64,000 nt of DNA from Guillardia theta CCMP2712 (GCF_000315625.1 NW_005434641.1:263113-327112), one strand, 5' to 3'; counted from the stretch's first letter, positions 4,146 through 62,674 are shown. Program-made: numbers and translations. Notes: generated by a model from the sequence alone, not told the origin.

Positions 4146-5069
4146 GTGGGGTGGTCCTGTGCTTGCGATGCACACGATGTACAAATGCTCGGAACAGTTT
4201 CACAACGCAGCATGGGAGCATCAGGGAAAAGATTTCTCGACTGCACTATAAGCAGAAGTTCGTACAACGAGCAGCAGGAATATAAAGTCACTGGTAGTCT
4301 CACGAATGCGCAATACTTCAGTCCTCCAACCCTTGATGACACAGACAACCAGTCAAAACTTGAACCAAGTTCAACATCAGCTCCTCAACTCCACCAAGCA
4401 CAAACGTTCACAGGCTATGCACGTTCAACATTCAAAGCTGCGAGACGAAATATTCATCGAAATCAAAATCAAACAAATCAAGTTCAAGAACAAACAACAA
4501 AACTCGAATCAACACAGGTAAAAACAATAAATCAGGCAAAACAATACGCAGAGAACGATACGGACGAAAACAGATTCAGCATGGAAAATGAAAGCGATGA
4601 TGAGCCCCAGCCATACGAGTACGACGACGGCAACAGCGAGCTCTTCGCCCATGTCACCCTCAGACGAAAGCATCATGAGGACCTCCGCACCAGAGACAGC
4701 GTCATGCTCGACAGCACGACCGTCACCAGCTACTTCCACATGCGCCAGAGCGAGGCGGCGGCGGCGTTCGGGATCTCGCTGACAGCCTTCAAGGCCGCAT
4801 GCAGGAAGCTCGGCATCCAGAGGTGGCCGTACATGCGACAGAAGGCGGCTGCTTCCGCCCAGACCGCCATGACAGACCCAGACCAGGAGGCCGGCGGGGC
4901 GCGTGGGAGGAGGCGCGACCGGCGGGTCACGACGGGCCCAGGCGCTGGGGCGGAGCAGGAGCAGGCAGGCAGGGCTCGATGGGACGGCAGCCTTGAGGAC
5001 CTGATGGAGGAGGCGCTGGAGCATTGCACGCGGAAGGAAGAGGGGCAGTTTATAGCAGAGGGCAAGTGA
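4146..5069 (+). CDS. RWP-RK transcription factor, copy 3 (intact, Q/N/T-rich unique N-terminus; first in-frame ATG at 4185)
   Basis: 307-codon ORF with the shared RWP-RK block; TATAAAA at 4036-4042 upstream. Confidence 0.85.
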   Translation: MGWSCACDAHDVQMLGTVSQRSMGASGKRFLDCTISRSSYNEQQEYKVTGSLTNAQYFSPPTLDDTDNQSKLEPSSTSAPQLHQAQTFTGYARSTFKAARRNIHRNQNQTNQVQEQTTKLESTQVKTINQAKQYAENDTDENRFSMENESDDEPQPYEYDDGNSELFAHVTLRRKHHEDLRTRDSVMLDSTTVTSYFHMRQSEAAAAFGISLTAFKAACRKLGIQRWPYMRQKAAASAQTAMTDPDQEAGGARGRRRDRRVTTGPGAGAEQEQAGRARWDGSLEDLMEEALEHCTRKEEGQFIAEGK

Positions 5070-5454
5070 AGGCGTCCGTCAGCCTTTCACTCAGAGTCTA
5101 CGTCTACGCCTGCCTGTCCCTGACGCCCGACGCATGCCTCCCTCTCTATCTGGGCCCGCGCCCTCCTCGTCCGCCTACATCGAGAGCACTCCGGCGTCCA
5201 CAGGGAGCCTCCCCGGCGGCCCGCGAGAGGTCCTCTCATAGCGGAGATGGCATGCTGGGGCTCATCTCGACGTGGCCATCCTGCAGCCATGTCCTCCTGG
5301 GGCCTGAGGTACCTCCCCCTATACGACCGGGCTCCTTGTCCTGGCTCCTCCGCCTCCCCTTGTCCCTCCCTGCGGGGGCCTCCGCATTCCCTTTTGCTTC
5401 CGATCCGTCGTCGTCCCGTACGACCTGCTCCGTTTCCTCCCTCTCCCCTCCCGT

Positions 5455-5946
5455 CTAGCCCTGCCCCACCCCACCATACCTCGTCAGGTCTGCTTCGACT
5501 TGGTTTGGGCAACCTTCCGGCGCACATGACGAGCAACAGGCCTTGAGGAGCGAGGGCGACGTCTCGAGCCGAGGGAGAGAGACTCGCTCATCCAAGCATG
5601 AGGCGACAGGCGCGCCCGCTAGCCATGACAGAACATTGCAGAAAGGTGCCTCTAAGCTGGATTTCAAGTCCTCACATTGGAGCAGATAACACATTTTTGG
5701 ATTACAATTCAGTGCGTTGCACATGCAATTTCATTCCGTATCAGGTAAATATATCTTGTAAGCAACTTTTGCTGTCCAGAAGTCTACATATACCAAGTGA
5801 TCAATAAAACTGCAAAGCGGTGAATTCTCAATGGATTCAACCTTGCAGAGAGTTTGCATAATCACAAAAGCAATTGATAAACGAATCAAAACAAATGATG
5901 CTGGATAAAACAGAACCAATAAAGCATCCCAATTGACAACCCACAA
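5455..5946 (-). pseudogene. Degenerate sulfotransferase-like paralog joined to the shared 3' end
   Basis: Frame reads ...HLVYVDFW...TE*NCMCNAL...CYLLQCEDLKSSLE... then joins the shared CPNQVEADLTR; internal stop at ~5731; CEDL resembles the sulfotransferase YEDL motif. Confidence 0.4.
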
Positions 5947-9937: not shown

Positions 9938-11459
9938 CTATACGACCGGGCTCCTCCTCCTGGCTCCTCCGCCTCCCCTTGTCCCTCCCTGCGGGGGCCT
10001 CCGCAAACCCTTTTGCTCCCGATCCGTCGTCGTCCCGTACGACCTGCTCCGTTTCCTCCTTCTCCCCTCCCGTCTAGCCCTGCCCCTCCCCACCATACCT
10101 CGTCAGGTCTGCTTCGACCTTGTTCGGGCAAGCCCGTCTCAGCTCCTCTAGCGCGTCGTGTAGCTCCTTGGCGTCCGCGCAATGCCTCTCCGACATCCTG
10201 TACCTCCGTCCCTCTGACGGCGCCTCGCACACGAAGCTCGCGCACGTCCTGGGCGACGGCGCTTGTCTCGGCCGCCTCAGCGCTCCCTGTATAGACCGCC
10301 CGAGACTGCCCGACGCCGGCGCATGCCCGTCGTAGAGCAGCTCGTCCAGCGCCTCGACCCCCTTGCCGGTCGCGATCTCGTTGTAGTCGAGGCACACGTA
10401 GCTCCTCTTGTCTAGGCGTCGGAGCTGCGCTGCTAAGTCGAGCGCGCTCGTGCGGAGGGTCTTGGCCTGCACGTTCCAGGGGCGGAAGCGACGCTTGATG
10501 GTGCAAGAGCATAGGATGCTGAGAGCGTCTCGGAGCAGCACGACCACCTTGAGAGTCTTGCCAGCCTCCTTCATGATGTCGGCGAGTTTTGAGACGTCTG
10601 GGTCTCGTTCAGAATCTCCGCCAGAGTTTGGATATGACATCATTCCTGAATGGCACAGTCTTGTTTCATCCATTATATTCAGGAATGTCATGGCTGGTTT
10701 TTGTGATAAGTCGGATGGGATTGATTTTAGCTGCTGCAGCAAGTAGAGGCTTGCCTTTTTGGGGCTTGACGCCCACCTGATATTGAACAACCCATTCTGA
10801 CTCTCTTCATTCCATAACGCGCAAACCAGCTGCATGCTCTGCTCAGTCTTCCTCACGTGAGGATGCTGAACACTTGCTTCTTGTATCAGGTGGTGGCCCG
10901 TTCCCTCAAGGCCGGCCCAGAATACATACACATCTCTTGCAAAGAATCTTCCATTATTCGATGGCAGTGATTGCTGTGGTAGGTGAGCATCGGAAAGACG
11001 TTTGGCTGCTTGTAAGGGTTGCTCTACTCCTTCTTGCGCTTTGGAGTCTCCGAGTCCTGAAGAAACGAACATCTTGCCACGGCTGTGCAGCGTCCGGTAA
11101 ACAAGCGATCCGAGCCTCTTGACGACTGTCTGCTCGTTGTCTCCTTTTCTCAGGGAAGTGGTAGGGACGTTTTGGCTGAAATGTTCAAACGTCGCGTTTC
11201 GGTCGGGGTACAGGATTTGAGCATCAGGGTTGGTCGCGCGGACATTGAAGGGTTTGCGATGCTCTAAGGAGCTCAACTGGTGAAGCAACCGCAGGCTCTT
11301 GGCCTCGTTGTGCGCTTCTTTTCTCAAAGCACTCTGGTCATGAGCACGAAGGGACGGATCTCTTTGTAGCAAGCTATGATGCAAGACAGCGCCTGCTAGC
11401 GCCGCAAGGAGCGGGATCAAGATGCGGGTATACCTTGAGCTGATGCTGCTGCAAGACAT
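9938..11459 (-). CDS. Putative sulfotransferase-fold type II membrane protein (exons 11459-10099, 10043-9938)
   Basis: N-terminal anchor ILIPLLAALAGAVL; FWAGLEGTGHHL resembles a 5'-PSB loop and VVVLLRD a 3'-PB motif; 55-nt GTATGG...GCAG intron 10098-10044 gives C-terminus RSYGTTT...SPVV*. Confidence 0.6.
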
Positions 11460-17191: not shown

Positions 17192-19066
17192 GTGCAGGTC
17201 CTGCAAAGCCCAAAAGCCGAATTTTTAAGTTCTGAAATAATTCCAGGTTTCACCGCGTTAGAGACTGCCAATATGCCTTCTCCTCTCGAGTATCAGGTTC
17301 TAGCGCTGCCTCAGCTCGATGGAGCGGACACCAAGGACAAGATGACAAAGAATCAGAAGAAGAAAATGAAGAAGAAGGAGAAGAAAAAGCAGAACCCAGA
17401 AGAGTCAACTGAAAATGCTGAGGGAGTTGTGAAAGTGGAAGCCAATGGCACAGATATGAATGGTCTTGAGGGTCTGGAGATCGAGTATGTCACTGATATG
17501 ATGTTGGACGAGAATGATCCCAATTTTGACGAATGGGCAAAGATCTTTCATAAATTTCAGAAAGGACCCCAGAAGAAAGAGCTGGACGACGAGGCTATGG
17601 GTGCTGGTCTCGATGGTGAAGAAGCAGTTCAGCCCAAAGTGACCGAAGTCAAGAAGGAGAAGAATTTTGATAGTGATGACGAAGACAATCAAACGTCGAA
17701 GCAAAAGCTGAGTAAGAAGAAGTATAAACAGTTGCACAGGCTGTCGATTGCTGAGTTGAAGCAGCTTGTGAAGAGGCCAGATGTCGTTGAAGTGTGGGAT
17801 GTTACTTCGTCGGATCCTCGATTGCTTGTGTACTTGAAGAGCTACAGAAATACTGTCGCTGTTCCTCGCCACTGGTGCAACAAGAGGAAGTACCTTCAGG
17901 GGAAACGTGGTATTGAGAAGCCCCCATTCCAGCTTCCACACTTCATTGAAGCTACTGGTATTGCAAAGTTGAGAGCAGCCTATGAGGAAAAAGAAAATGA
18001 GAAGAATGCAAAGCAGAAAGCACGAGCCATGTCAAGACCAAAAGTAAGTAAGATGGACATTGATTATCAAGTGCTCCACGATGCCTTCTTTCGATACCAA
18101 ACAAAACCGAGGCTGACGGGTCATGGAGATGTTTATTATGAAGGCAAGGAGTTCGAGGTCAAGTACAAGGAAAAGAGAGCAGGTGTATTGTCGGAAGAAT
18201 TGAAACACGCTTTGGGTATGCCTTCCGAAGGCGTTCCGGTTCCACCTCCCTGGCTCATCAACATGCAAAGATATGGACCACCACCTTCGTACCCAAATCT
18301 GAAAATTCCTGGTTTGAATGCACCTATACCCTCTGGGGCCCAGTTTGGTTATCATCCGGGAGGGTGGGGTAAGCCACCAGTTGACGAGTTCGGACGTCCG
18401 ATTTATGGTGACGTTTTCGGGACGAACGATACCGGTGGAGCTGCTATGAATGAAGCGCCGATAGACAAGAGAAGATGGGGTGAAATCGAGGAAGTTGAGG
18501 AGGAAGAGGAGGAGGAGGAAGAAGAGGAGGAAGAGGCCGTCGACGAGGAAGCTGTGCAGTCTGGTATCAGTTCAGTAACCTCTGGCCTTGAGACCCCATC
18601 CTCTACCGGCATCGAATCTATCGAACTGCGCAAGAATGCTATGTCTGGAGGATTGGACACTCCTGATTCCTCGATTGCGTCAACAGACTTCAACTTGAGG
18701 AAGGACAAATCACTTTACAAGGTCATCTCACAGGAGGACTCCAAGGTAGGATCGGACCTCATTGGTTCATCCTTCAAGTATAACATCTCAGATTCATCCG
18801 ATTCAGCCGCTGCTCGCAAAGACAAGCGTCATGTCGACTTGATGAAGAGCCAGGCATCTGCTGGAGTGGAAGTCACCATTGATGCCTCAGAGCTTGAAAA
18901 CATGGATGAGCGCATGTTGAAGGACAAGTACGATGAAAAAGTTTCTGGGAACAAGCAACATCGTGAAGATGTCAGCGAGGTCTTTGAAGAGCAGGCAAAG
19001 AAACGAGCGAAGAAAGGCGGCGACAAGGACAAGAAGAACAAGTATAAGGAGTATGCCTGGGGATAA
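17192..19066 (+). CDS. SF3B2: Splicing factor 3B subunit 2 (SAP145/CUS1); true start may be a downstream ATG
   Basis: LSIAELKQLVKRPDVVEVWD, DPRLLVYLKSYRNTVAVPRHW, DIDYQVLHDAFF, PPPWLINMQRYGPPPSYPNLKIPGLNAP (DUF382 + PSP domains). Confidence 0.97.
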   Translation: MQVLQSPKAEFLSSEIIPGFTALETANMPSPLEYQVLALPQLDGADTKDKMTKNQKKKMKKKEKKKQNPEESTENAEGVVKVEANGTDMNGLEGLEIEYVTDMMLDENDPNFDEWAKIFHKFQKGPQKKELDDEAMGAGLDGEEAVQPKVTEVKKEKNFDSDDEDNQTSKQKLSKKKYKQLHRLSIAELKQLVKRPDVVEVWDVTSSDPRLLVYLKSYRNTVAVPRHWCNKRKYLQGKRGIEKPPFQLPHFIEATGIAKLRAAYEEKENEKNAKQKARAMSRPKVSKMDIDYQVLHDAFFRYQTKPRLTGHGDVYYEGKEFEVKYKEKRAGVLSEELKHALGMPSEGVPVPPPWLINMQRYGPPPSYPNLKIPGLNAPIPSGAQFGYHPGGWGKPPVDEFGRPIYGDVFGTNDTGGAAMNEAPIDKRRWGEIEEVEEEEEEEEEEEEEAVDEEAVQSGISSVTSGLETPSSTGIESIELRKNAMSGGLDTPDSSIASTDFNLRKDKSLYKVISQEDSKVGSDLIGSSFKYNISDSSDSAAARKDKRHVDLMKSQASAGVEVTIDASELENMDERMLKDKYDEKVSGNKQHREDVSEVFEEQAKKRAKKGGDKDKKNKYKEYAWG

Positions 19067-39486: not shown

Positions 39487-42400
39487 TCAACTCCTCAACA
39501 GGTGAAGGAGGTCGATTGCTGTGCTCTTGATCAGACTGCTGACTTGCCTCTGCGTGGCTGCATCGACATCAGCCTTGGCCCTGTCCCCCTTCTTCGTCTT
39601 CCTGCCACCTTTCGTCCTGTTCTTCTTGTCACTGTGCCCGTTGACACTGCCAAGGAGCGGGTGGTACTTGATGGGTGCCTCCTCCACTGAACATCCCTCC
39701 CCGCTCTGAAGATTCTGTTCTGCACCATCGTCGACTATCTCCTCCAACTCCAGCAGGTCACTCTCTTTGGCAGACCTCTTGGCCTTTGCCGGTAGGATGA
39801 GATCCAGGATGGAGTTTGACAAGGGCTTAACTAGCGGCTTCGGGGTAAGGTTGTTCTTCTCGTTGTACGCCAGCTGAAGCCTCCTCCTCCTCTCTGTCTC
39901 TGCGATGGCTCGAGCCATCGAGTTGGTGACTGTCTCGCAGTAGAGGATGACAGTCCCGTTCACGTTCCTCGACGCTCTGCCGATGGTCTGGATGAGGCTG
40001 CGGTCGCTGCGGAGGAAACCCTCCTTGTCTGCGTCCAAGATGGCAACGAGCGAGACCTCGGGGATATCGAGGCCCTCGCGCAGGAGGTTGACGCCTACAA
40101 GCACGTCGATCTTGCCAGCGCGCAGGGCGTGAACGATCTTGAGCCTCTCCATTGACTTCACCTCTGAGTGCAGCCATGCTGCCTTGAGGTCATGGTCCCT
40201 GAGGAAGCTCGAGACCTCCTCCGCCGTCCTCTTGGTCAAGGTTGTGATCAGTACCCTCTCCCTCCTCGATATTCTCTGCAGGATCTCCTTGAGGAGATCG
40301 TCCACCTGCCCTACCGCGCTCCTCGTGTGAACGATCGGGTCAAGGATGCCCGTGGGCCTGATGATCAGCTCCGTCACCTCCTCCATGCTTGCATCGCCGC
40401 TCCTGCACAACGAACTCTGGGGGTATCAGAGTCAGACGCGGTGCTGTAGAGTTTCAGCTGGGCACCTGCTGAAGCTCCCACTGCCCAGGGGTGGCGGAGA
40501 CGAAGATGCACTGGTGGACTCTGGACCAGAACTCTTCCTCCTGCAGCGGGCGGTTGTCGAGCGCGGAAGGGAGGCGGAAGCCATGGCGAACAAGCGTCTC
40601 CTTCCTCATCCTGTCTCCGAAGTACATGCCTCGAACTTGAGGGACCGTGATGTGAGACTCGTCGACGATGAGCAGCCAGTCCTTGCAGAAGGGGGTGAGG
40701 GGAGCACGGCGAGGGAGGGATTCACCTCATGGGGGAAGTAGTCGACAAGGCAGTCCGGAGGCTCTCCGGCCTTCCGACCGGACAAATGCCGGGCGTAGTT
40801 CTCGATGGAGCGACAGTATCCTACCGCCTCGATCTGCATCAGGTCTGACTCTGTCCTCTGAGTCAGCCGCTCTGCCTCCAGGAAGGAGCCTTTCTCCTAC
40901 AACCCACGTCAGGCAACACAGGAGAAGCAGACCCGGCTGTTACCTCCAACTCCGCCACCCTATCGTAGAGCTCAGTCCTGATCTCATGCAGAATCCTCTG
41001 CTTGTCTTCCGACGACGTGACGAAGTGGCTGGCCGGGTAGATCACGATCTCGCTGATGTTCCTATTCGACTCTTTGGCCTCGTTTGCCTCCTCCTTTGCT
41101 CCCTTCATCAGGACTTGAGCTGGGGAGGAGCTGGCTTCGGAGGTGGAAGCAGGAGAATGACTCTCTTCTTCCTGTATGCGACTCACGTAAAACCCGTCAG
41201 CCGCCGAGAGGTTCTGCGCGACGGCCGAGCGCCGAAAGAAAACTCTCAAGATGCTGTCGGTGTGGGAGGGCCCGATCAACAAGCAACCTTGTTCCTCATC
41301 CGACAGTGCACCTCCTCCCTCCTTGTCTCCACGAGCCTTCGCTCCGTCGCTGAGCACGTAGATCTGTCCTCTGCTGATCGCAGGGCTGAGCTCGTTCGAC
41401 ACGTAGTGGAGGAGGCGAAGTTTGGAGGCCAAGGCGAGGGGGGAGCACTGGGCCCCCACGTGGAGGAGGAGGGAGTTTCTGAGGTACTCCGACGGCATTC
41501 CTAACCCGTAGATGCAGCTGACGCTAGCGACGACAACTGTGTCTCGTCGCTCGAAGAGGGAGCGAGTGGCCGAGTGCCGCAAGCGGTCGATGTCGTCGTT
41601 GACAACTGAGACCTTGTCCACGAACACGTCGGAGACGGCGAGGTAAGCTTCGGGCCTGTAGTAGTCGTAGTAGGACACGAAGTACTCCACCGCATTGTTG
41701 GGGAACAGCTCCTTCAGCTCGTTGCACAGCTGGGCTGCGAGCATCTTGTTGGGGGCGAGGATGAGCGTCGGTTTCTGATGCTGGACGATCACGTTGGCCA
41801 TTACGAAAGTTTTGCCCGTGCCTGTGGCTCCCAGGAGGGTCTGAAAGCGGAGGCTCTGCCGCAGGCCCGTCACAAGCTGCTCGATTGCCTTGGGCTGGTC
41901 GCCGCACGGGGAGAAAGGGGAGAAGAGGATGAAACGGTCGTCTCCTCTCGGTCTCCTGTCGTGCCCGGGGAAAGAGAACCCCATCTGCCTCCTCTGCTTC
42001 CCCTCGGACGCCAGGACTCCCTCCTGCTCCTTGAGCAGGTCAAGCTTCCCTTCCCCCAACTTCTCCAGCTCGTCCCACGTCAGCACGCGTCCTCCTGCGC
42101 TCCTCACCTTAGCGACAGCAGCAGAGTCAGCGGCAGCTCGAGTGAGCACGAGGAGGAGCTGGAAGCTGGTGTCTGCGAGGGGACGGCCGGTGAACCCAAC
42201 CTGCTGCTGGAGTTGTGGTGGGATGTCGAGGAAGAATCGGGACCGCTGGGAGACAAACTCCTTCTTGACATCGATGTTGCCGAACCTCCCCCTGGTCCTC
42301 CTCCTCCAGCTGAAGTAGAGGTGGTCCCTGGCTCGGGTGCAGGCCACGTAGACTAGCCTCCTCTCCTCTGCTATCTCGATGTCGTCGGTGAGAGATCGCT

Positions 42401-44453
42401 GGTGGGGAAACGTCCCCTCCTCCATCCCCACACAGAACACCACCTTAAACTCTAGGCCCTTGCTCGCGTGCACGGTGAGCAGAGAGACCTGCTGCTGGAG
42501 CTCCTGCGACTGACCTCCTCCCTCTGCCACATCCTGCTGCTGCTGCTGCTGCTGCTGCTCCTGATTGTCCAAGAAGACGTCCTCGAGGAAGCGGGAGGTG
42601 GACGAGAGGCCTCTGTCAGGGTAGTGGAGAGCTGCTAGGAGGAGCTCCTTGAGGTTGGAGACCCTGCTCTCTCCGTCTGGTTCCTTGCGGTAGAACTCCT
42701 CCAGCCCGAGCTCCTGTACCACCACCTGGACCATCTCTGCTGGGGTGCAGACGGAGACTTTGTCTGAGAACAGTCTCAGGGACCTGCTGAGATTGAGCAG
42801 GGAGTTCCGTTGCCTGGATGGGATTCCAATCTCCTCCTTCTCCTCCTTCTTCTCCTCCTCCTCCTCCAGAGACAGGATGAGTTGGGTTACCGACTGATTG
42901 CGCAGAGCAGCGAGGGCAACCAGCTTTTGGCGAGTCACTTCCCCTACCCCTCGGGTCGGCACGTTGAGGATGCGGAGGAGGCTCGCCGAGTCAAGGTCGT
43001 TGCAGAGGACGCGGAGGTACGAGAGGACGTCTCTGATCTCCCTCCTCTCGTAGAACCTCGTCGACCCGAGCACGCGATAGGGGATGCGATGTCTGCGCAG
43101 ACAGTCCTCGAAGGCTCTGCATTGCTGGTTGGTGCGGAAGAGCACGCCGACGTCGCTGAAGGCCCCGATGCTCCCCCTCTCTTTCATCCTCATCACCTCC
43201 AATGTCACGAACTCCGACTCGTCCCTGTCATCGTATGCGCTGTAAACCTTGGCCTTCTCCCCTCCCTCGCGCATGGACCGAGTCGTCTTGTTGTGCCTGT
43301 TCCCCTGCCCCTGCTCGATCAGCGACTGAGCGATGGAAGTGATAGTCATCGTGCTCCGGAAGTTCTTTTCAAGCGTGCAGACTCGACATCTCTTCATCTC
43401 CCCGATGAAGCGCGCGAAGATGTCTGTCTGCGCTCCTCGCCAACCGTAGATGCACTGATCCTCGTCGCCGACCACGAACAACGTCCTCGTTTTCCTCCCT
43501 TCCTCGCTCCCCTCCTCGTCCTTCTCTCCCTCCTTCTCCCCCCCCTGTCCTTCCGCGTTCCCCTTGAACAGCAGTTTGATCAGGTCGTACTGCAGCAAGC
43601 TGATGTCCTGAAGCTCGTCCACCATCAAGTTCCTCCACTGCCGTCGGAACTCCCGCAGGACGTGAGGCAGCAGCAGCAGTCGCATCCCTTCCCGCAGCAG
43701 CATGTCGAAATCCAGCGCGTTCGCCCGCCTCATCGCTCGCTCGTACGCCCTCCTGATCTTGCTCAGCGCGATCCCGTTCCACTCCTTCCCGCCCAACTCC
43801 CCAGCTGACCCGTTGCCGTAAAGGGTCTCGGCGCTCAGAAGATTTCCCAGCTCGACGATGGCGCGTTTGTCGTACCTCTCGTGCCCCATCCCCAGCAGGG
43901 CGTCGGACAGCACGGTGTACTTCTCCTCGTTGCCGTAGATAGAGAAGCTGGGGGCGATTCCCAGCTCCTCTCCCCTCCTCCTGAGCAGGTTGGCGCAAAG
44001 TGAGTGGAAGGTCCCTGCAAAGAATCCACGGCGTCCCCAACCCCCTTGCCAGCTCCAGCCCAGCTGCTGGAGCCTTTCCTTCAGCTCGTTTGCGGCCTTG
44101 TTGGTGAAGGTGAGGGCGAGGAAGGAGTCTTGCGGCTGCTCGCGCTCAGTCCGCAGAAACTCCATCCTCCTCGTCAGCACAGTTGTCTTCCCCGAGCCCG
44201 GCCCAGCGATCACGACAGTCACGTGCTCTCTTGTCTCTCCCTCCTCCTCCTCCTGCTCGATCGCCTCCAGCTGCTCGTGGCTGAGCCCGTGTGCCCAATG
44301 CTCGCTATGAGCTTGCTCGTCTTGTGCTGGGGAGACGGAGCCAGTCTGTTGTAGGAGAGCAGCGTCGGAAGGTGGAGGAGGGGCTTGAGAAGGAACAGGA
44401 GCAGGAGAGGGAGGAGGAGGCGGAAAAGACGCGCTGTTCCACCACTCAGCCAT
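39487..44453 (-). CDS. uvrD-uvrB: UvrD/PcrA helicase - UvrB fusion protein (further 5' exons probably extend to at least ~46306)
   Basis: UvrD: [66 protein letters not shown]. UvrB, starting in the same ORF: [40 protein letters not shown]; then downstream exons [49 protein letters not shown]. Confidence 0.93.
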
Positions 44454-45061
44454 CTCGAAGGCGATGTCGACTTCCTAGAAGGAACTGAGACGTGGAGGAG
44501 CAAGGAAGACAAGTGTGAGACAACGAGGAAGGGATGTGGTTGAGAGGAGGATTCTGAGAGGAGGAGAGGGGAGGTTGAGTGGAGGGGGAGGAGGAGGACA
44601 GGAAGGATGGGAGAAGGAGGACGGAGGAGGAAGAGGAGGGTGCAGGACTAACCGCGACATCGAGAGACATCTTCCTATCTGACACGATGACGATGGGAGA
44701 AGCTGCAAGGATGTCAGACTTCAGGCGGGAGAGGTCAGTGAGGTACCTTGAGAGGAGATCCTAGAGGCAAACATATGAAGGTTCGACCTCCTGATATGAG
44801 GGGGCGCGTCCGCCTGGGGAGGAAGGTGAGGAGGAGGAAGAGGAGGAGGAACCGTTGATCACTGTGCTTTCTTCTGTTGCTCTGCCTGAGACGATCTTGG
44901 CGGCGAGGAGTTGCAGAGCATCGTGTTGGTTGTTGGTGTTTGTTTCTGTTGGCGTGCCAGGTTCTTCAGAAGGAGGAGGAGGACTTGTGTGCGAGGGATT
45001 ATCGATCTTGCTGCTCTCTGCTGTGTTCTGTGCCCAGCGTCATTGTCGAGAATTGATTAAG

Positions 45062-45103
45062 TGTTGGTGGTGGTGTTGGTGGTGGTGGTGGTGGTGGTGG
45101 TGG

Positions 45104-45141
<38 letters not shown>

Positions 45142-45142
45142 C
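45062..45142 (+). repeat. (GGT)n(GAT)n microsatellite, intronic
   Basis: Seen directly. Confidence 0.9.
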
Positions 45143-46384
45143 TCACCTCAGCATGTTTGTCGTACAATGATGACCATTCTTCATGTCCGCGCATTCTTCG
45201 CTATAATGTTGAGTTACAACGAACCGACAAATCAAACAACAAAGGGGATGCTGCAAGAATCAGCTTGGAGCGAGGAGAGATCAACGGAAAAACATGAATC
45301 ATAGTGTTCAGAAATGGAAGAAGCCAAGAGCAGGAAGGCAAGTATGAGGAGAGGAAGAGAACAAGAGGAGAGGAAGAGAACAAGAGGAGAGGAAGAGAGG
45401 AGAGGAGGAGAACAAGAGGAGAGGAGGAGAAGAGGAGATGGGGGATATGGAGCAAGAGGAGAAGAGGGAGCAAGACGAAGGGAGGAGAACGAGAGGTGGA
45501 CGGGAGGAGGACGAGAGGTCTGCTACTCGTTACCCGCGGGCTGTAGATAGAATCGCTCATGACTGGACGACTTGCCTTGAGCAGCCCAGCCTGAGGTCAG
45601 AAGTTCAGATGAGAAGATGTGAGAGGAAGGAGAACGCAGGAAAATAGGAGGGAGGAGGGAGGAGGGAGGAGGGAGGAGGGATAACAGGCGAAGGACAACG
45701 AAGAAGCAGGGAGTGCTGGGTAAGTAGGAGGTATCGGAAAGTAGGAGCAGGAGGAAGGAGGGAGAGAGAGAGCAAAGTGGAGAGCAGTGGACCTCTATCC
45801 GCATAGAGCTTGGGAGGAGGAAGGAGGAGCACTGAGAGGGGGAGAGGATCTGTAGCCCGGAATTGTTGTTGAAAGAGGAGAGAGCGAGAGAAAAGCAAAA
45901 GAAAACAGCCTGCAGAACGTTTCAGCTCTCCTGCCTCTTGCCTCCTCCTGCTTCCTGCTTCCTGTCTCCTCCCCCTCTCCCTCCTCCTTTCACTCTCCTC
46001 CTCGTTAAAACACTCCCAACAATCCATCCTCCTCCTACAATACCACCCTAGCTCCTTCCCTCCCCATCCTCCCTTTCTTCCCCCTTCCACACCCCCTCGC
46101 CTTGCTCCTCACCTCGACGTACTCAGGACGCCCAGCTCTCCCAAGGAACGCACTGAGGACGTTGACGTGACTCTCTCCTCCCTCCAGCCATCATGTTACC
46201 TTCTCTCCTCTCCCCACATCCTCCTGCTCCTCTGCAGCCGGAACGCGATCCCCCGCTGGTTCGACAGAACCTTCGACATCTTCGTCGTTGAGAACCAAAG
46301 AGGCATGCTGCAATCCAACATACGTCATCTCCTCCCACTGCTACACCTGCTGCTGCTGCTGCTGCTGCTGCTCATCTGTGTCTC

Positions 46385-47010
46385 TCACCTCCTCCACTTC
46401 CTTTCAGCTCGTCGGAAAATCTTCTGAAAACTGTCGACATGCTGTAGCATCTTAACAGGCTGGTCGCGTTCGCTCGTGACGTTGGAGCTCAAACTTGTCC
46501 CGTTGACTTCACTCAGATTTCTCTTCTGAAAATGCTCGATGATCGCAGACGCCTGAAGCTCGTCGACCCCCTGGCAGGGCTGCCACGTCAGCACCAGAGC
46601 CGAGCCCTCCACATCCAATACAACACAGCTTCGCCCTCCCTCCTTGACCCATCGGTCAGTCACCGTCCCTTCTGTCTTTCTCACTTTCATCTTCATCATG
46701 CCTCGCAGCTCTTCTCTCCCCCGTCTCCTCGTCTCCTCGTCTCCTCGTCTCCTCCGCTCCTCGTCTCCTCCGCTCCTCGTCTCCTCCGCTCCTCCTTCCC
46801 CCTTCACCTCGACAGCTGCTATGTCTCCTTCTTCCGCTGTCCCAAGCGCCTCGATGGACCCGAACTTCTCAATCAGCTTCTTCCTCGTCTTCCTCTCAAT
46901 CCCTGCGTAATCAGAATCATCTTGAAGAAATATCCATGCCGCTCCTCCGCTTCCTTCCCCTCCTCCCCCTCCTCCCTCCTTCCCCTCCTCTCCTTCCCCT
47001 TTTCCTGTTG

Positions 47011-47061
<51 letters not shown>

Positions 47062-49460
47062 ACATTCTCCTCCTCCTCCTTCCATCCTTTAGCCTCCTCT
47101 CTGAGCCCATTTTGGGTTGTCTCACCTGGGATCGCATCAAAAACGCTCCGAAGGTATTCGGAGCTCCGAAGGGAGCGATGGTGATAGACAGCAAAGGCAT
47201 GGGCCTCGTCTCGACACTTCCTGCGACTTGGCATTACAAACGAGAGGAAGAAGCAAGTCTGACAAGAAGAGTGAGGTTGCAAGGTGTACGCCGAGAGCTG
47301 TGGAGACAAGATTCGATGACATCGTGAAGACAACAGCAATGGCGGTACAAGTACGCAGAGGTGGCCAGTCATGTGGGGCAACTCCAGTAGTGGGGCATGC
47401 GTAAACTTGCCTCAACAGCAACATGGCAGCTGAAAAGATCCCTCCCTGCTCGCAGCGTCACCTCAGCTCAGGTCCAGCTCTCCTCACCTCAAAGTGCAGG
47501 GGTCGAGGATTGTCGGGGACATACACCTCCTCTCGCTGCTTCGCCAAGGACAGGAACGTCACTCTCTTCAGGATCTCCTCGCACCTCCCCGGGTCCGTCG
47601 AGTTTCGAATCGCCGCCATGACCGCCGCGAGCTATCAGGACATGAGCAGCAGCAACGCCACCTCCAGCTCGTCTACCTGCCCTCTCCCTCCGTCGATCAA
47701 GACGACGTCGGGGAGCGGGCTCGAAGGGATCGAGGAGTAGCTGCAATTCTCCCCTTTCTCTTCCCTCCCTTGCCTCTCATTCAGACCGAACCGTCTTATG
47801 ATCGCCTCAGCAAGAGAAGCAAAGTCATCTGAATGGCCCGTTCGCACGTTGGCGCTTTCGATCCTAATCCACCTGTTGCCATTTTCAACATTTTTCCACC
47901 GCTCGTCTCTCAGTTTTCAGGAAACATTGATAATCACATCTCGTTATCTTCAAACACAACAAACATGTCGAGATCACCTCGAACGCAATCACCAACTTTA
48001 CAAGGGGAACAGACATCTGCCGTTGTTTCAGTCCTCACCTGTAATATCTCGGAACGGGAAACCCATCGAGCAACATCGAGGAGGAAGCGATAGTTCCATA
48101 CCCCTACCAAATCGCAGTCTCAGCCTTTCTCTTCATCTCTCTCCACCCACTTCCCGTCCTTCTTCCTTCTCCCCTTGCTCACCATCTGACTCATGACCCC
48201 TTACCGGTATCCTCTCCCCTCCTCTCCTCTCCTCTCCTCTCCCCTCCTCTCTTCTCCTCTCCTCTCCTCTCCTTCTTCTCCATCATTCCACTCTGCTCCC
48301 TTACCTGTATATGGCTGATATCATACCCCTCAATGATCCTCGGGGTCTTCTCCATCTTGAGCGTCGCACTCAGCTCTGCCAGCCCATCTATGATCGTTGC
48401 TATCAAACAAACTTCAGCTCTCTGCCATCCTCCCTCCTCTCCTCCTGCCTGATTTCTGCAATCCGTTCCCGAGCGCGGCGGCTTGTTCAGAGAAGAGTCG
48501 CAGCGCGCTGGTCGAGTTCTTCTCATGCACGAGCTCCAGCAGTTCCCGGATGGCGTTCTGTGACATGTCAGACTCTGTTGGCTCGCAGTGCACAGGAGAT
48601 CACGGGAGAAGAGTTGCTGTCTGGGAGAGAGGACTTTTTAGAGACATCCATCGAATCGCTGGACTCGTCGTCAGCGGAAAGGTTGCTTCCCTTGCTAGTT
48701 CTTACCTCAGTATGGCCTCTGCGACTGCCATGGCCTCCTCAGAGGCTCTCAGTCCCCTTCCTCCTCTCCGCGTCTCATTCTTCAGAGCGATCTCCCACAA
48801 GCAGCACATGTTGATGAACTTTCTCAACCTGCGGGGTCATGGCGTCACCCCATACGAACAGGCGGGCCCGTCGAGCTTCCTGATGCAAATCTTGTTGGCG
48901 AACGATCGAGAGGCAAAGGGACCGTAGAGACGATCGACTTTCAGCCAGTCTGAGCAGCAGAACGAGATCAGGACAGGCACCAACAACAGGAGGAGGAGAA
49001 GAGGAACGAGCAGAGCAAGATGTCAGAAGCAGCAGCGCTGGAGGCGATGGATACGTCGCCTATCACCCCCTCACCTGACTTTGGAGCGCTCGATTGCAAT
49101 CGAGGGAAGAAGCAGTTCCCCGAGAGGAGAGGAAATCGAAGGGGGAGGGAGGAACAGCTCAGATGCTCCGCGACTGTCAGGTTTCAGAAGAGGACAAGGG
49201 CAAGCTCTCGTTCACCCTCAGCCCCAGGGACGACGAGCTCTGACTTGCGTCTCTCCACCATCAGGTGCGGCGACGGCTGGCTCCATGCAAAGTTGATGAA
49301 CCTGAGGAAGACATTGAATACAGCACATGACTGCGTCTGACGAACTGAAATTTATCCTTTCCCCCTCCCCCCCCTCCTCCGCCCTTCCCCTTCCTTATCC
49401 CCGCTTGCTATCCCCTCCCACACCCTCCTCACTTCTCCCTCCTCTTCTCCCTCCCTCACC
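46385..49460 (-). CDS. uvrC: UvrC-like excinuclease (RNase H-like nuclease + HhH), multi-exon; N-terminus/GIY-YIG not clearly resolved
   Basis: YGPFAS (~48900-48930), PRIIEGYDISHIQG (~48305-48345), DDFASLAEAIIRRF, LPDVVLIDGGRGQV, RDEAHAFAVYHHRSLR, GIERKTRKKLIEKFGSIEAL...VEGVDELQASAI. Confidence 0.88.
47010..47061 (+). repeat. (CTG)n microsatellite, intronic in uvrC
   Basis: Seen directly. Confidence 0.9.
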
Positions 49461-50378
49461 ATGGATGATGATGTGACCCTTTGCTGATGTTTCTTTCACC
49501 TTCCTTCAACCTCTTTCTTGACAGGCAAAGAAACGCCTGGGTTCTGAGGCAATCATTACCACCAACACCAGTGCATTCCCTATATGTCTTGCTTACAAGG
49601 TCGTGAACATAAAAGATGCGCTTCTTCTGTACAGCCGAACTAGCCGCATGTCTTCGTCTGCACTTTGCGGCGAACGCTTTTGGCTTGAGAGCTTTTCCTG
49701 TGCATCGGGATATCAGATACTGCGCAGTAAAGAAATTCATCGAAGGATGACGAATAACAGGAAGAGAAGTATCGTAACACAGAACTATGAAACACAACAA
49801 GTGAAGACCTTTCTTGATCTGTTTCTTGTCCTCAATCCATCAGTGCTCGTCGGGAGATGTAGTTGGCCATCTCCCCCTCCTCCCCCTCCTTCGTCGCCAA
49901 GTCTTCTTCTCCTCCCTCGTCCTCGTCGTTCGCTCCTTTGCCCTCGTTGGTTGCTTCCCTTCTCTCCTCCTCCTTCTCCTCCTCCTCCCTCCAAACATCG
50001 CGCGCCTTGCTCCCCGAACATAGATCCTTGGAGGAACCTACAAACATGCCACCCACCCCACTTCATTCCATAGAATGGTGTGGTGAAAGTACCCCTCCCT
50101 GAGACCCTACATGCATGAGAAATGAGATCCGTCCGACTGATGGAATGCACGTGAAGTTTTGAGAGGGGAAGGGGGAGGAGGAGGAGGAGGAGGAGGAGTA
50201 AGAAGGACTAGGAGGACACGCCAAGAAGAGGAGTTGGAGGAGGACAAGGGAGGAAGAGGGGTTAGAGGGAGGTGGTTGTAGAAGGAGGGAGAAGGGTTGA
50301 GTGTGGATCGAGTAGCGAAAGGAGAGGAGAGAGGTTGAACACAACGAAAGGGAGGGAGAGAGGGGGAGAGAAACAGGG

Positions 50379-53300
50379 ATGACGCATGCGACTCGGAGCA
50401 AGAAGTCACAGCAGCCATCTCATGCCGGCACAACACTGCGCGAGACGAAGAGGAGAAGACATACGGTCAAGCAGGAGGGGCAGGGGGAACAGGGGGAGAG
50501 GGAGCGCGGGTTCAGATCATGGCTGAACAAGGAAGGGTTTGTCCTCCATGACTCCCTCGATCTGAGATTCTCCGGCAAGCTGATCGCTCTCTTGCTCCCT
50601 CTCCTCTTCCTTGACTGCTGAGGGCCGCAGGATCGCTTAATGGTGGAGGAGTCTTCGCCAGCAAGGCTCTGAGGAGAGGAGAGGTGCTGTGCACATGGCA
50701 TGACGCGTCTCGCGGTGCGATGATGCTAGAACAGACAGCCGTCCTGATCCCCAAGAGAAGCTGCATCACCTGGATGACCTCCGGACTGCGAACACACCTG
50801 GAATCCATCTGTAACGGTCTATCCTCCTCCTCACTCCTCCTCACTCCTCCTCACTCCTCCTCACTCCTCCTCTTCCTCACTCCTCCCCTCACCCCCCCCC
50901 TCCGGCCTCTTCCTCCTCCTCGTCCCTCCTTCTGATCCTCCTCCTCCCTCTCCTCCTCCTCTTTCTCCCCCCACCACGTTCTCGTTCATGTTCTTGTCTT
51001 CATACCCCATAATATCCATATAAAACTTCTCATCCCCTCCCCATTCTTCAGTCTTCCGCTTCTCCTGCTTCCTTCCACTCCTCCCCGCTCCCACTCTCCC
51101 ACATTCCTGATCCTCTTCCCCAGACGTTACCGAGAGGACGATCAAGACGTTCTTCGCTGCACCTGCGTCTGTCAAGTTGACTTGCTGCCTCCTGTTTGAG
51201 ATGTCCTTGCAAGAAAGGTTCCTCCTGAGAGGGGGAGGGGAAGGGGGAGGGGGGGGGGAGGAAAGATGCAGGGGGGGAGTCGTGGGGAGGAGTCGTGGGG
51301 GAGGAGGGGGAAATGGGGAAGGGGGGACCTCATGTCGTGCAGATTTCGAATCNNNNNNNNNNNNNNNNNNNNNNNNNNNNNNNNNNNNNNNNNNNNNNNN
51401 NNNNNNNNNNNNNNNNNNNNNNNNNNNNNNNNNNNNNNNNNNNNNNNNNNNNNNNNNNNNNNNNNNNNNNNNNNNNNNNNNNNNNNNNNNNNNNNNNNNN
51501 NNNNNNNNNNNNNNNNNNNNNNNNNNNNNNNNNNNNNNNNNNNNNNNNNNNNNNNNNNNNNNNNNNNNNNNNNNNNNNNNNNNNNNNNNNNNNNNNNNNN
51601 NNNNNNNNNNNNNNNNNNNNNNNNNNNNNNNNNNNNNNNNNNNNNNNNNNNNNNNNNNNNNNNNNNNNNNNNNNNNNNNNNNNNNNNNNNNNNNCATCCC
51701 TCCTATCCTCTCGATCCTTCGCCATCGACAAGTGTCGTCGACTGCCTTCCCCTGTCATCCAAGAGTTCTTCACCATCCCTGCTCCTCTACCCCTGAACTC
51801 GCTCTAGATGCTCCCTTCCTTCGAATCCCACCTTCCTCCCTTTCCTCTTCCCCTCCCTTCCTCTCCTTGGTTTCTTTCATTCCTACCCGCTTCTTCCTCG
51901 CTCATTCCCCCCTCCCTCCCTCCCTCCCTCCCTCCCTTCATCCATCCCTCCCTGTCGCTCCCTCCATCCCTCCCATCGTCTCAGCCTCCTGCTCCTCCTC
52001 TCTCGTTCATCCCTCTGTCTCATTCTGTACGCCAGCTTCCATGGGCCAGGCATGATCCCTCTTGCGGATCTTTTCAACCATCTCACGGATAGAGAAAATC
52101 TACATCTAATAGGTGCTCCCTCCTCCTCTTCTCTCTCCTACGCTCCCCCTCCTCTGTGCTCTACTCTCCTCCTTTCTGCCCTGCTATAGCCTCTTCCTTC
52201 TTCCCCACCCTCTGCCTTTCTCCTCCTCTCCCCCTCTCCTCCACCAACCTCTTCCTCATCAGCTTATCTCTGATTGTTCAAAACATCTTTTCGTACTTCC
52301 AGCTTTCCATGCTGACACGAGTTCCAAGGGGATGAAGATACAACAAACTTGGAGGAGGAGGAGGAGGAGGACAAGAAACAAAGCAGGAGGTTGAACGCAC
52401 AAAGGCAGGAGAGCACGAGAGGCAAGCAAAAGGAGGAGGAGGATGGAGGCATGTTAAGCATGGAGGTGGTCCGAAGCGTCAAGGGAGGAAGTGAGATCTT
52501 CAACACGTATGGAGAGCTTGGGAGTGCTGCCCTCCTACTGCGATACGGGTGAGTGGGGGAGGAGGAGGAGGAGGAGGAGGTGATGGAAGAGGAGGAGGTG
52601 ATGGAGGAGGAGGAGGAGATAATCGGGGGGAAGGAGGAGGAGGTGGAGGAGGAGATGGTGGTGGTGGAGGCTCGCTGCCGCGTGTTCTGATGTGTGGCAG
52701 TTTCGTGGACAAGAAGAACCCACACGACTTTGTGAGCATGAACGAGGACCTGGTGGGAGCCGGGCTGGTGCGATGGATGAGGAGGAGTGGGGGGGAGAAG
52801 CTGGAGGAAGAAGTGAGGAGACGACTGAAGTTCTGCATCGATGCTGGTGAGCTGAAAGCAGAGAGGTTGATGAAGTCAGGGATGGATCAGCGGAACGATA
52901 AGGGTGTTCGAAGGGTGGAGGAAGAGGAGGAGGGAGGAGGAAGAGGAGGAGGGAGGAGGGGAGGGGGAGGGGGGGAGGAGGAGGGAGGAAGGAAGGGGGG
53001 GGGTGAGGAGGAGGGGGGAGCNNNNNNNNNNNNNNNNNNNNNNNNNNNNNNNNNNNNNNNNNNNNNNNNNNNNNNNNNNNNNNNNNNNNNNNNNNNNNNN
53101 NNNNNNNNNNNNNNNNNNNNNGAGGAGGGTGAGGATGGGAGGAATATCGACACGAAGGAGCAGGAGAGCAAAGTCGGAAACAAGGGAGGATCAGAAAATG
53201 CGACAAGACAAGTGTTGAAAGGGAAGGAGGAAGGTCAGCAGAATGGAGAAGCAGAGGGAGCAGACGAGGAGGAGGAGGAGGAGGAGGAGGAGGAGGAGGA

Positions 53301-59818: not shown

Positions 59819-62674
59819 ATGCCAGGAACGCCGCGCAGGCCGCGTTCTTCCCCAGGAAGGACGCGAAGGTCTATATCGAACAAGGAAAACGAACCGCTGC
59901 CACCTCCCGAGTCGCCAGGGGTCATGGTCACCAAAGAGAAGGTCCATGACATCAAGTTGACGGCAAGTGAGACTGACTGACCCGCAGAGGGCATCCCGCG
60001 TCACCAGCAGATTCTCCGTGCTCAAGGTGCTGGGGACCACTGAGTCGGAGATATCTCCATGCCAGGACAAGGCCAACGACATCGCCAAGAAGAGAAGAAC
60101 TTCTCGTGTGAGCTTCGGAAACATCCAAACAACCATCTTCCAGAAGGACTCTGAGTTCGGCAACAACTCTCCTTCCCCTGGCTCCTCCGGGAAAGCATCA
60201 CAGCCTACTAACCTCTCCACTCTCCCTGACGACACCGTCTTCGGCTCACCTGCCGTGTCGGTTGCTGGCAGCGAAGCCATGGAGATCACTGGCACAGTGC
60301 TGCAGCCGCTCCCTTCCCTGCCCAACATGTCGGATCAGGACGATGGCAGCTTTGCTTCCTTTGGGGATGGCACGCAAGAGCAACCTCAGTTCGGTCAGCC
60401 GGTCTCCCTGTCGGACTTGGTTGAGGAGGATGAACGTTGCTGGGAGAATCAAAGCAGGCAGAAGAAGCCATCAGGCCAGCTCGAGTTCATGAAGGACAGG
60501 CCTGCAGCTGAGGACAAGAACGCTGACCTGACCGACCATGACCTGACTGCAGACATTCCTGACCCTGGTAACCGGACCCGAGCTCTTGCGGATCACACCG
60601 GCGCGTTCATGAGCGGAAACACTGGTGTCTTCCGTGATCAGACGTGCATGGGTATGGAGATCACAGCAGCTTACGGAGGCATCGTCTCTCAACGCCCCGA
60701 GGTAGCCTCCCACTCAACCTCCTCTACCTGCTCTCTCCTGCACCCGCTCGGACTGACGTTTCTTCAGCCCTCCATGAACAACGACGTCACCTGCACTGAA
60801 GGCATGGAGTTCACTAACGCATACGGCGGGATCGTCGCTGCCAACGCCATGCAGGACAAGCCAGTGGAGAGCCGCCAGTCTGCCATCAGCGAGGAGATCA
60901 GCGGGACCCTCTCGAAGCTGCGCGAGGCTGAGATGGCAGATCATGATGATGGAGAGGAGGAAGAGCCGCATGATGCCGTGGCGATGGAGATGACGGGGAC
61001 CTTCGGGAAGATCCTGAGCGCCATCAGCACTAACCCAGCAGACGAGGAGGAGGAGGCGACTGACTCTCAAGGAGCGGAGGTGTGGGGCAACAAGACCTTC
61101 ACAGACGGGGAGGTGACGATGTTCACTCCTCTCTCCCGCATCAAATCCCTCGGCACTCGTCGGGCGTCTCGCTCCAGCATGGCCCCAGAAGCCCGCGAGC
61201 TCGTGTCTCAGTACGGGAAGATGGAACAAGACAACGTGGCTGGTAAGGCACCCTTGACGGTGCTGGCTCGTGCTCGGTTGACGTGGGTCCTGCAGGTGAT
61301 GTAGCAGAGAACGGCAGGAGGATGAGCGTGAGACCCAAGGACAGCGGTATCACGCTCGACTCGTTCCTCGACGAGATCGGGATCCGCTTCCTCACCAATG
61401 CCAAGGCCTCGAAGCGCAAGTCGTCAGTCTGCCCGCCCCTCCGGCTGGTGCCAGGAGAGATGACGGAGGTTGACAAGCTCAACGAGGTGCTGGTGAGCGA
61501 GACGGAGCTGGGGCAGCTCCGGAACAACAGCTCGAGGCTTCGATCTATGTACGAGAAGCTCAAGGAGGACATGGTGGAGCTGGAGGAGGCGATCAACCGA
61601 CACAACCCTGAATGCTTCGCGCTGCCGTTCGGGGAGGATCAAGAGGTGACGATGAACTTTCAAAAGCAAATGAAGCTGCTCAAGAAGTTCTGCCGCGCCA
61701 AGGCTGAGAGCCGCTGGATGGAGTGGCGGGAGAGTGCGCAGCAGCAAGTCGAGGACGCCTTGCAGCGGGTGAAGGATGCGGTGCTGGAGGACGGAGCCAT
61801 GATCGATCAGAAGATGGTCGAGCTCGCCGAGGAGCGAGTCCGCGTGCTGCAGGAGAAATCTTCCATCGCCACAGAGGGTCTTCGAGCTCAGCTGACGAGC
61901 ATGGCGGAGGCTGAGGCTGAGCAGAGCTTCGTGGTCGGTGCCTTCCGTAAGCAGGTTGAGGACCTCGAGAGCCAGCGGCAGCAGCTGGAGGAAACCATCG
62001 AGAGCATCAAGGAGGAGGCGGCCAAGGTCAGCGTGAACCCCAACGACTCCATGCTGGTCGAGCTCGAGGGCATCGGGGAGGAGGACGTGGCCAGGCTGAG
62101 CCTCGAGCATGCTGCCACCCAGGGCCTCGTTCCATGGCGCCTCCTCCGCACGAGCACGGGGGGGCTCACCCTGCAGCTGGAGGGCGGCTGGACTCTCAAC
62201 GTTCAGCTGGGCAAGTCGGGGGTGGTCAGCTCCGTGCAGCTCGACCGCCAGGAGCCGCCGACTGAGTTCGAGCGAGCGTTGATGGAGCAGGCGGACCTGC
62301 ACGGCCTGCTGAGGAGCTGCAGGAAGGCGAGCGAGCTGGGGGATGTGCTGCAGGAGTTGTCCTTCCGCATCGGACGGGTCGTGACGCTCAGCCAGGAGCT
62401 CGACAAGCTCTCGCGCATGTGCTTCGTGCAGAGGAGGGTGGACGGCGATGGGGCTCCGGAGCTCTTCACCACCGTCGCTAACCCCGAGCTGGGCTACAAG
62501 CTGGGCCTTACGTGGAAGATGTCGTGGCACTACCCTGCTGGGAGGATGCCGCTCTCCATGGAAGTCCTGTCGGGTAGCGCCGATGAAGAGCAGATCCTGG
62601 ATGTCACGAGCAGGCACAGCTGCGGCCCCCTCCGCCTGACGAGGATCCTGCGAGAACTATCAGGGAGCGGCTGA
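59819..62674 (+). CDS. KNL1: Kinetochore scaffold KNL1/Spc105/Spc7
   Basis: SVLK (SILK) and RRTSRVSF (RVSF) PP1-docking motifs; MELT-type repeats MEIT, MEITAAYGGI, MEFTNAYGGI, MEMTGTFGKI; ITLDSFLDEIGIRF; coiled coil and RWD-like end; introns ~59942-59987, ~60702-60768, ~61243-61295. Confidence 0.9.

Follow-up and report, generated by a model that had tools for sequence, protein, structure and literature searches.

A probable single-chain fusion of a Tudor-less PcrA/UvrD-type helicase and a cyanobacterial-type UvrB encoded in the nuclear genome of the cryptophyte Guillardia theta

Bacterial nucleotide excision repair (NER) is, to our knowledge, usually described as absent from eukaryotes. Here we analyse a gene of the cryptophyte alga Guillardia theta CCMP2712 that lies on the minus strand of a 64,000-nucleotide (nt) stretch of genomic DNA (NW_005434641.1:263113-327112; hereafter the window, to which all coordinates refer unless another locus is named) and that encodes both a PcrA/UvrD-type helicase and UvrB. 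Our preferred reading, to which we assign a probability of roughly 60%, is that this is a genuine single-polypeptide gene, in which a superfamily 1A (SF1A) helicase devoid of a Tudor domain is joined via a conserved 50-residue block and a linker to a complete cyanobacterial-type UvrB, the whole chain acting as a tethered repair module. The open reading frame (ORF) listing of the window contains a stop-free stretch of 1196 codons at 44453-40863, and the first-pass annotation of this DNA had described it as a single frame running from UvrD motifs into UvrB; every motif it quoted was found in place. Counted from the ATG at 44453, the coding span (39487..44453) comprises four exons and 1,608 amino acids (aa).

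The exon model combines a tblastn search of Gloeobacter UvrB against the region with direct reading of the DNA. Exon 1 (40944..44453, 1170 codons, ending in ..VAELE) covers an N-terminal extension, the PcrA/UvrD helicase, the junction, UvrB domain 1a, the beta-hairpin and a divergent domain 2. It is followed by predicted intron 1 (40897..40943, 47 nt, GTAACA...GTAG), exon 2 (40726..40896, 57 codons, UvrB positions 277-332), predicted intron 2 (40682..40725, 44 nt, GTGAAT...CAAG), exon 3 (40466..40681, 72 codons, UvrB positions 333-403, including the DESH box LLIVDESH), predicted intron 3 (40417..40465, 49 nt, GTGCCC...CCAG, ending at the sole acceptor that keeps the frame) and exon 4 (39487..40416, 309 codons plus stop), which encodes Helicase_C, the UvrB signature domain (UvrB positions 416-614) and a non-conserved basic tail. 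The earlier proposal that the remainder of UvrB resides in spliced exons is borne out by these three further exons and their predicted GT-AG introns, all of which restore the frame. Profile searches (Pfam and NCBIfam) were run exon by exon.

The helicase core (aa 57-750; 42204..44285) aligns to residues 5-647 of PcrA (1pjr), with SF1A motifs I, Ia, II (VDELQD), III, IV, V and VI all intact; AGPGSGKT falls at aa 83-90, VACTRAR at aa 703-709 and SRFFLDIP at aa 738-745. Pfam recovers UvrD-helicase (PF00580) at aa 73-351 (E 8e-55, 186.8 bits vs a cut-off of 23) and UvrD_C (PF13361) at aa 360-718 (E 3e-62, 211.5 bits vs 25.6), and the NCBIfam pcrA model (TIGR01073) matches aa 72-793 (E 1e-142). The equivalog cut-offs are reached neither for PcrA (TIGR01073, 477 vs 911 bits) nor for UvrD (TIGR01075, 397 vs 1144 bits), and by the NCBIfam standard the helicase half reads as a divergent PcrA/UvrD family member rather than an equivalog. 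Its likeness to PcrA ends where the C-terminal Tudor domain, which in PcrA binds RNA polymerase and UvrB, would begin: the Tudor model PF21196 was not detected in the ORF at E <= 0.01, nor in the two both-halves relatives P0001 and P0002 described below, whereas the bacterial homologues P0003-P0005 do carry it. Compared with bacterial PcrA/UvrD (1pjr, 2is1), the algal half thus retains all helicase motifs and the collinear alignment, but lacks the Tudor domain, contains low-complexity inserts, is nucleus-encoded and covalently joined to UvrB, and is most closely related to a PcrA-like gene that stands alone in the same genome.

The UvrB half appears complete, as its four exons align without loss to positions 2-614 of the Gloeobacter protein. 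The part carried by exon 1 (40944..41942, UvrB positions 2-275) includes GDQPKAI at aa 851-857, the Walker A motif GATGTGKT at aa 875-882, the beta-hairpin with its conserved tyrosines at aa 928-937 (41643-41672) and a domain 2 region with low-complexity inserts, so that, together with the DESH box, the elements of the superfamily 2 (SF2) ATPase core are present. Pfam recognizes a ResIII/DEAD segment at aa 852-923, and positions 2-184 of the NCBIfam uvrB model match aa 841-1023 (E 4e-86, 289.6 bits), while a 307-aa ORF at 40410-39487 covers positions 401-627 with 297.3 bits; both values stem from exons scored apart and are to be read accordingly against the TIGR00631 equivalog cut-off of 750 bits. 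In the last exon, the UvrB signature domain PF12344 scores 63.4 bits (cut-off 27) and Helicase_C 74.8 bits (cut-off 23.5).

Two accessory regions of UvrB could not be recognized. Domain 2, a UvrA and Mfd-like docking domain, is also where the PcrA Tudor domain docks, and the UVR domain forms the UvrC-binding tail. UvrB_inter (PF17757), the domain 2 model, gave no match at E <= 1 on 40944-41960, whereas a UvrB paralogue encoded on contig C42 of the same genome scores 23.8 bits, above the cut-off; the UVR domain (PF02151), present in all bacterial UvrBs listed, gave no match at E <= 1 in the last exon. The PcrA-interaction motif is likewise missing from all eukaryotic UvrB copies, but also from 70 of the 82 sampled bacterial UvrBs, and for that reason we dropped its loss as evidence. 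Relative to bacterial UvrB (1d9x, 2fdc), the fused algal protein therefore shares the full length in register, Walker A, beta-hairpin, DESH box, Helicase_C and signature domain, and differs in having neither a profile-recognizable domain 2, nor a UVR domain, nor a UvrA partner in the genome.

Between the two halves lies a junction that the first-pass annotation had treated as a linker of about 85 residues. Only the last part of it fits that description: some 50 residues (aa 743-793; 42075..42227), located at the expected start of the PcrA Tudor domain, constitute the best-conserved part of the junction (DIP..L..V..TG.PL...VLTRAAA.S.A..RS..G..TW), with 23 invariant columns among six aligned sequences representing four lineages, and are followed by a variable linker of only about 45 residues (aa 794-837; 41943..42074) that spans 35-45 residues across the aligned sequences before UvrB begins. 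The linker is predicted to be disordered, as judged from AlphaFold2 modelling of a 361-aa junction fragment (mean predicted local distance difference test score, pLDDT, of 56.7). Two candidate introns had been proposed here, at 42200-42108 and 42107-42069, each with a GT start and an AG end. We reject both and consider them exonic, because the 31 and 13 residues that they encode hold 18 of the 23 invariant residues of the block.

The junction is carried within one open frame in all four lineages, namely G. theta and three groups of related contigs that we refer to as relA (L009, L026-L029), relB (L010, L011, L030, L031) and relC (L035-L037). relB and relC share 79% nucleotide identity; their junction codons differ by 18/9/36 substitutions at codon positions 1/2/3 and by one 3-nt indel, and the relA pair differs by 4/0/7 substitutions and no indel; a nearby 69-nt intron-like segment shows 8/9/10 substitutions between relB and relC and indels of 17 and 5 nt. 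The preference for third positions, unlike the pattern in the intron-like segment, indicates that the junction is translated and under in-frame purifying selection.

These data bear directly on the alternative that the long ORF overstates the fusion and that UvrB is made as a separate product, either from the methionine at aa 824 in the linker or from an internal promoter. In the window, about 27 residues separate that methionine, possibly what remains of an ancestral UvrB start codon, from GDQP; its counterparts in relB and relC lie 15-17 residues ahead of that motif, approximately where bacterial UvrB begins. The stretch upstream of it is, however, the best-conserved portion of the junction and shows the codon-position bias of a translated frame, all four lineages lack a stop between the halves, and an internal start 2.5 kb into an mRNA would be rare for eukaryotic ribosomes. 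We consider two separate products improbable.

The fusion is not confined to G. theta. A word search with the whole ORF retrieved two proteins with both halves, P0001 (1060 aa, 42% identity, 73% coverage) and P0002 (910 aa), and an exhaustive phmmer scan of 1.84 billion representative proteins added P0132 (490 aa, 53% identity), which covers query residues 742-1102; no other both-halves protein was present among the top matches of that scan, whose protein collection also missed P0001 and P0002 and is hence of imperfect coverage. A word search limited to region 700-850 had no match at E <= 0.001, missing the known fused relatives as well, and is uninformative. Several metagenomes, a Logan assembly and one NCBI assembly supplied the relatives' contigs, which we regard as eukaryotic because their interrupted Uvr ORFs adjoin synaptobrevin, SAP, RCC1 and WD40 genes. 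The fusion is retained by no fewer than three further uncultured eukaryotic lineages. One relative is annotated as a hypothetical protein, which is probably also how the G. theta gene figures in public annotation. The 69-nt segment mentioned above lies in the UvrD C-terminal region of relB (L030 ~11174-11260; P0128 aa 392-420) and, although stop-free, behaves as an intron, showing no codon-position bias and the 17- and 5-nt indels relative to relC; this would account for the start of the relC ORF P0132 just past it.

The first-pass annotation had placed the fused frame in a eukaryotic nuclear gene, a view that our results uphold. The predicted introns are of spliceosomal type and restore the frame, and the window also holds eukaryote-specific genes, namely two adjacent RWP-RK ORFs, an SF3B2-like splicing-factor gene (DUF382 and PSP) and a KNL1/Spc7 kinetochore gene with MELT motifs (1759-5069, 17192-19066 and 59967-62674), on which grounds we read the locus as a nuclear gene of the cryptophyte. 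The same observations weigh against a decaying relic, a bacterial contamination or an assembly chimera without function. Many low-complexity inserts, scores below the NCBIfam equivalog cut-offs and lost accessory domains would suit such an origin, but the 1196-codon frame is open with all catalytic motifs intact, removal of the introns restores an exact frame, the locus is flanked by eukaryotic genes, the architecture recurs in independent metagenome, Logan and NCBI assemblies, and the junction is under purifying selection; we judge this explanation very improbable indeed.

The two halves of the fusion appear to have different histories. In the UvrB tree, built by the more careful method, the fused algal UvrB groups with its fused relatives (support 100/99) inside a clade of Cyanobacteriota, Sericytochromatia and C42 UvrB sequences (100/100), which indicates a cyanobacterial ancestry; the sisterhood of the two algal UvrBs is weakly supported (60/51). 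In a quick maximum-likelihood tree of the helicases, in which deep nodes are weak, the fused helicases form a clade (Shimodaira-Hasegawa-like approximate likelihood ratio test, SH-aLRT, 99) whose sister (100) is a free-standing PcrA-like gene on contig C6 of the same genome, and the cyanobacterial PcrAs form a clade elsewhere in the tree; among named bacteria, the closest relatives are one Bacillota and one Dehalococcoidia protein, at 36-40% identity. Since UvrB groups with cyanobacteria and the helicase with the host's C6 gene, the trees argue for separate histories of two halves both already resident in the eukaryote, and, given the sister position, the C6 gene is likely the source or a duplicate of the fusion's helicase half. 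An earlier description of the fusion as bacterial-derived holds for each half, but a single origin is too simple. The C6 gene itself (L033, G000:C6:879000-888000, ~3205-5800, plus strand) begins with the leader MKGATSRGIAAVFFMAFIALGHG, followed by F.

We searched the host genome assembly (87.1 Mb, 669 contigs) for further components of the Uvr pathway. With the full-length UvrA profile TIGR00630, only generic ABC segments were found in the whole genome (best E 1.2e-6), and the UvrA DNA-binding domain PF17755 reached 19.5 bits, below its cut-off, in a search whose control matched 13 of 14 well-known genomes. UvrC is represented by a full copy fused on contig C42 and by an RNase H-like half in the window. 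On C42, no stop interrupts the passage from UvrB to the GIY-YIG domain of a complete UvrC (L032:7347-5632). Searched in this way, the genome appears to be without UvrA and yet to have kept two UvrB genes as well as UvrC nuclease domains. The C42 gene (L032, G000:C42:50000-59999, 9973-4944, minus strand) encodes GIY-YIG and then an RNase H-like domain after its UvrB, and F follows a signal-peptide-like segment at its start. Both fusions are nuclear and intron-bearing and place a cyanobacterial-type UvrB in frame with another Uvr protein; in the C42 gene, however, the partner is UvrC, UvrB comes first, UvrB_inter is kept and a leader is present.

How might such a chain work? Both halves keep their catalytic motifs. 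We propose that the fusion chain would constitute a tethered UvrB-UvrD repair module, in which the UvrB beta-hairpin would clamp the damaged strand, a UvrC-type nuclease would cut, the candidates being the C42 UvrB-UvrC fusion and the UvrC C-terminal half encoded upstream, and the attached helicase, as a built-in post-incision helicase, would strip away the cut oligonucleotide together with the nuclease. As the genome has no detectable UvrA, UvrB loading would have to be UvrA-independent, with the helicase possibly opening DNA for UvrB. The compartment served could be the plastid, the nucleomorph, the mitochondrion or the nucleus, all of which are candidates.

The bacterial precedents are consistent with a tether of this kind. 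The C-terminus of UvrD binds UvrB in bacteria (Manelyte et al. 2009, PMC2997466), and the partner of the PcrA Tudor domain is a beta-hairpin motif within UvrB domain 2 (Urrutia-Irazabal et al. 2021, PMC8318588). The same two proteins meet in the algal gene, where the C-terminal end of the helicase leads into the N-terminal end of UvrB in a Rosetta-stone relation; in contrast to the non-covalent bacterial complex, however, the algal contact is covalent, and neither a Tudor domain nor a domain 2 motif of the TGE type is present. We propose that the covalent tether would replace the docking of Tudor domain onto UvrB domain 2, a replacement that would account for the failure to detect either the Tudor domain or the domain 2 signature.

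Several points weigh against a tethered single-chain module. The loss of domain 2 is a non-detection by hidden Markov model (HMM), and outside its large inserts the region can still be loosely aligned with Gloeobacter UvrB; the strict PcrA-interaction motif occurs in only 12 of 82 bacterial UvrBs, so that its absence here says little; and AlphaFold2 confidence for the junction fragment is low, at the mean pLDDT given above. The C-terminal UvrD contact is dispensable for NER in E. coli, which makes the benefit of tethering less than obvious, and Met 824 would permit a separately initiated UvrB. Finally, splicing is predicted from the DNA, the steps of the mechanism are inferred, and the protein may extend 5' of the ATG at 44453.

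The last of these points concerns the DNA upstream of the fusion ORF. The C-terminal half of a UvrC is encoded on the same strand by exons at 46388..48400, comprising the RNase H-like 5'-incision nuclease (47503-47847, 39.3 bits, above the Pfam cut-off) and HhH, and is treated here as context of the fusion gene. By eye, IEGYDISH, SDDFASL, LIDGGRGQ and RDEAHAF are present and the D/D/D/H catalytic motifs seem preserved. The UvrC-like exons of the window have no detectable GIY-YIG domain, and a UvrC mid-region exon with the motif YGPFAS..C lies further upstream on the same strand (~48853-48930). The half ends 1.9 kb upstream of the UvrD-UvrB ORF, from which it is separated by a low-complexity spacer. 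Eight codons before the ATG at 44453, an in-frame TAG (44475..44477) closes a pyrimidine tract of about 160 nt and reads as a splice acceptor (..ttctAG|GAA), where an upstream exon could join in frame.

This arrangement raises the possibility of a larger gene, in which the UvrC half would be spliced onto the fusion to give one UvrC'-UvrD-UvrB chain that would include any leader of that gene. The UvrC exons lie directly upstream on the same strand, the order of truncated UvrC half and UvrD-UvrB is shared by relB, with proteins about 45% identical, the UvrD-UvrB ORF starts without a leader and the in-frame TAG ahead of it would also serve well as a 3' splice acceptor, a donor-like AG|GTGAGA overlaps the stop codon that closes the last UvrC exon, the N-terminal exon shared by the relatives (..AGLSQHGRP.PRRD..) has no conserved ATG, and relB has a UvrC-like ORF with a signal-peptide-like segment. 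Joining the AG|GTGAGA donor directly to the 44475-44477 acceptor would, however, be out of frame; at the protein level, nothing in the 1.9-kb spacer is conserved in the relatives, and tblastn of the spacer and upstream regions against them gave nothing significant; in the relB/relC alignment, similarity and codon bias are lost upstream of the conserved N-terminal exon; and relA has no UvrC piece within 3.9 kb upstream. We regard the larger gene as possible, yet clearly a minority reading. More doubtful is its extension to a single mega-protein uniting a 5'-incision nuclease, helicase and damage clamp that would act without UvrA on a non-nuclear genome, with the helicase replacing UvrA as the loader of UvrB and aa 743-793 serving as a new coupling element. 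A relA exon (L027 ~1172-1616) had been tried as a UvrC HhH segment spliced to the helicase and was rejected as the helicase gene's own N-terminal extension; because AGLSQHGRP is contiguous there in relB, the triple-fusion argument drawn from it was dropped.

Cryptophyte plastid-targeted proteins carry a signal peptide and then a transit peptide whose first residue is typically F. From the ATG at 44453, the N-terminus of the fusion protein is acidic and proline-rich, with no hydrophobic core and neither a signal nor a transit peptide, and thus does not show a bipartite plastid leader; a search of 44460-46400 (leaving out 45638-45686) and 48600-51000 revealed no ATG-led hydrophobic exon. The suggestion that the protein is probably organelle-targeted is therefore not sustained by the gene as modelled. 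Organelle targeting is nonetheless plausible by analogy with the C42 UvrB-UvrC and C6 PcrA-like genes, both of which have signal-peptide-like leaders followed by F.

The fusion seems very rare and, as the first-pass annotation had surmised, undescribed: protein searches gave few relatives, a feature search of the ESM Atlas gave only ordinary UvrD clusters and none with both domain sets, and our literature search found neither a description of a UvrD-UvrB fusion nor relevant papers on algal UvrB or UvrC. A 2006 survey of 318 UvrC proteins included no eukaryotic one (PMC1564403). The alga maintains two or more Uvr fusion genes that look expressed, without a detectable UvrA, so that UvrB is evidently useful in the absence of its canonical loader. 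If the single chain is made as we propose, the bacterial UvrD-UvrB contact has been rendered permanent by evolution, and the fusion would provide a natural Rosetta-stone confirmation of it as well as a tractable single-chain object for the study of UvrB loading and unloading without UvrA. It also leads one to ask which of the four genomes of the cryptophyte is still served by prokaryote-style excision repair.

A further observation concerns relB, where a 705-codon ORF (L030:1492-3609) upstream of the truncated UvrC half has no Pfam or NCBIfam match, and contains the motif TRLYGPFAS..LRC and the signal-peptide-like segment MKGTTRHALAAAGVFLACCVGLTLTVEALA; judged by these sequence features, it is probably the N-terminal part of that truncated UvrC gene.

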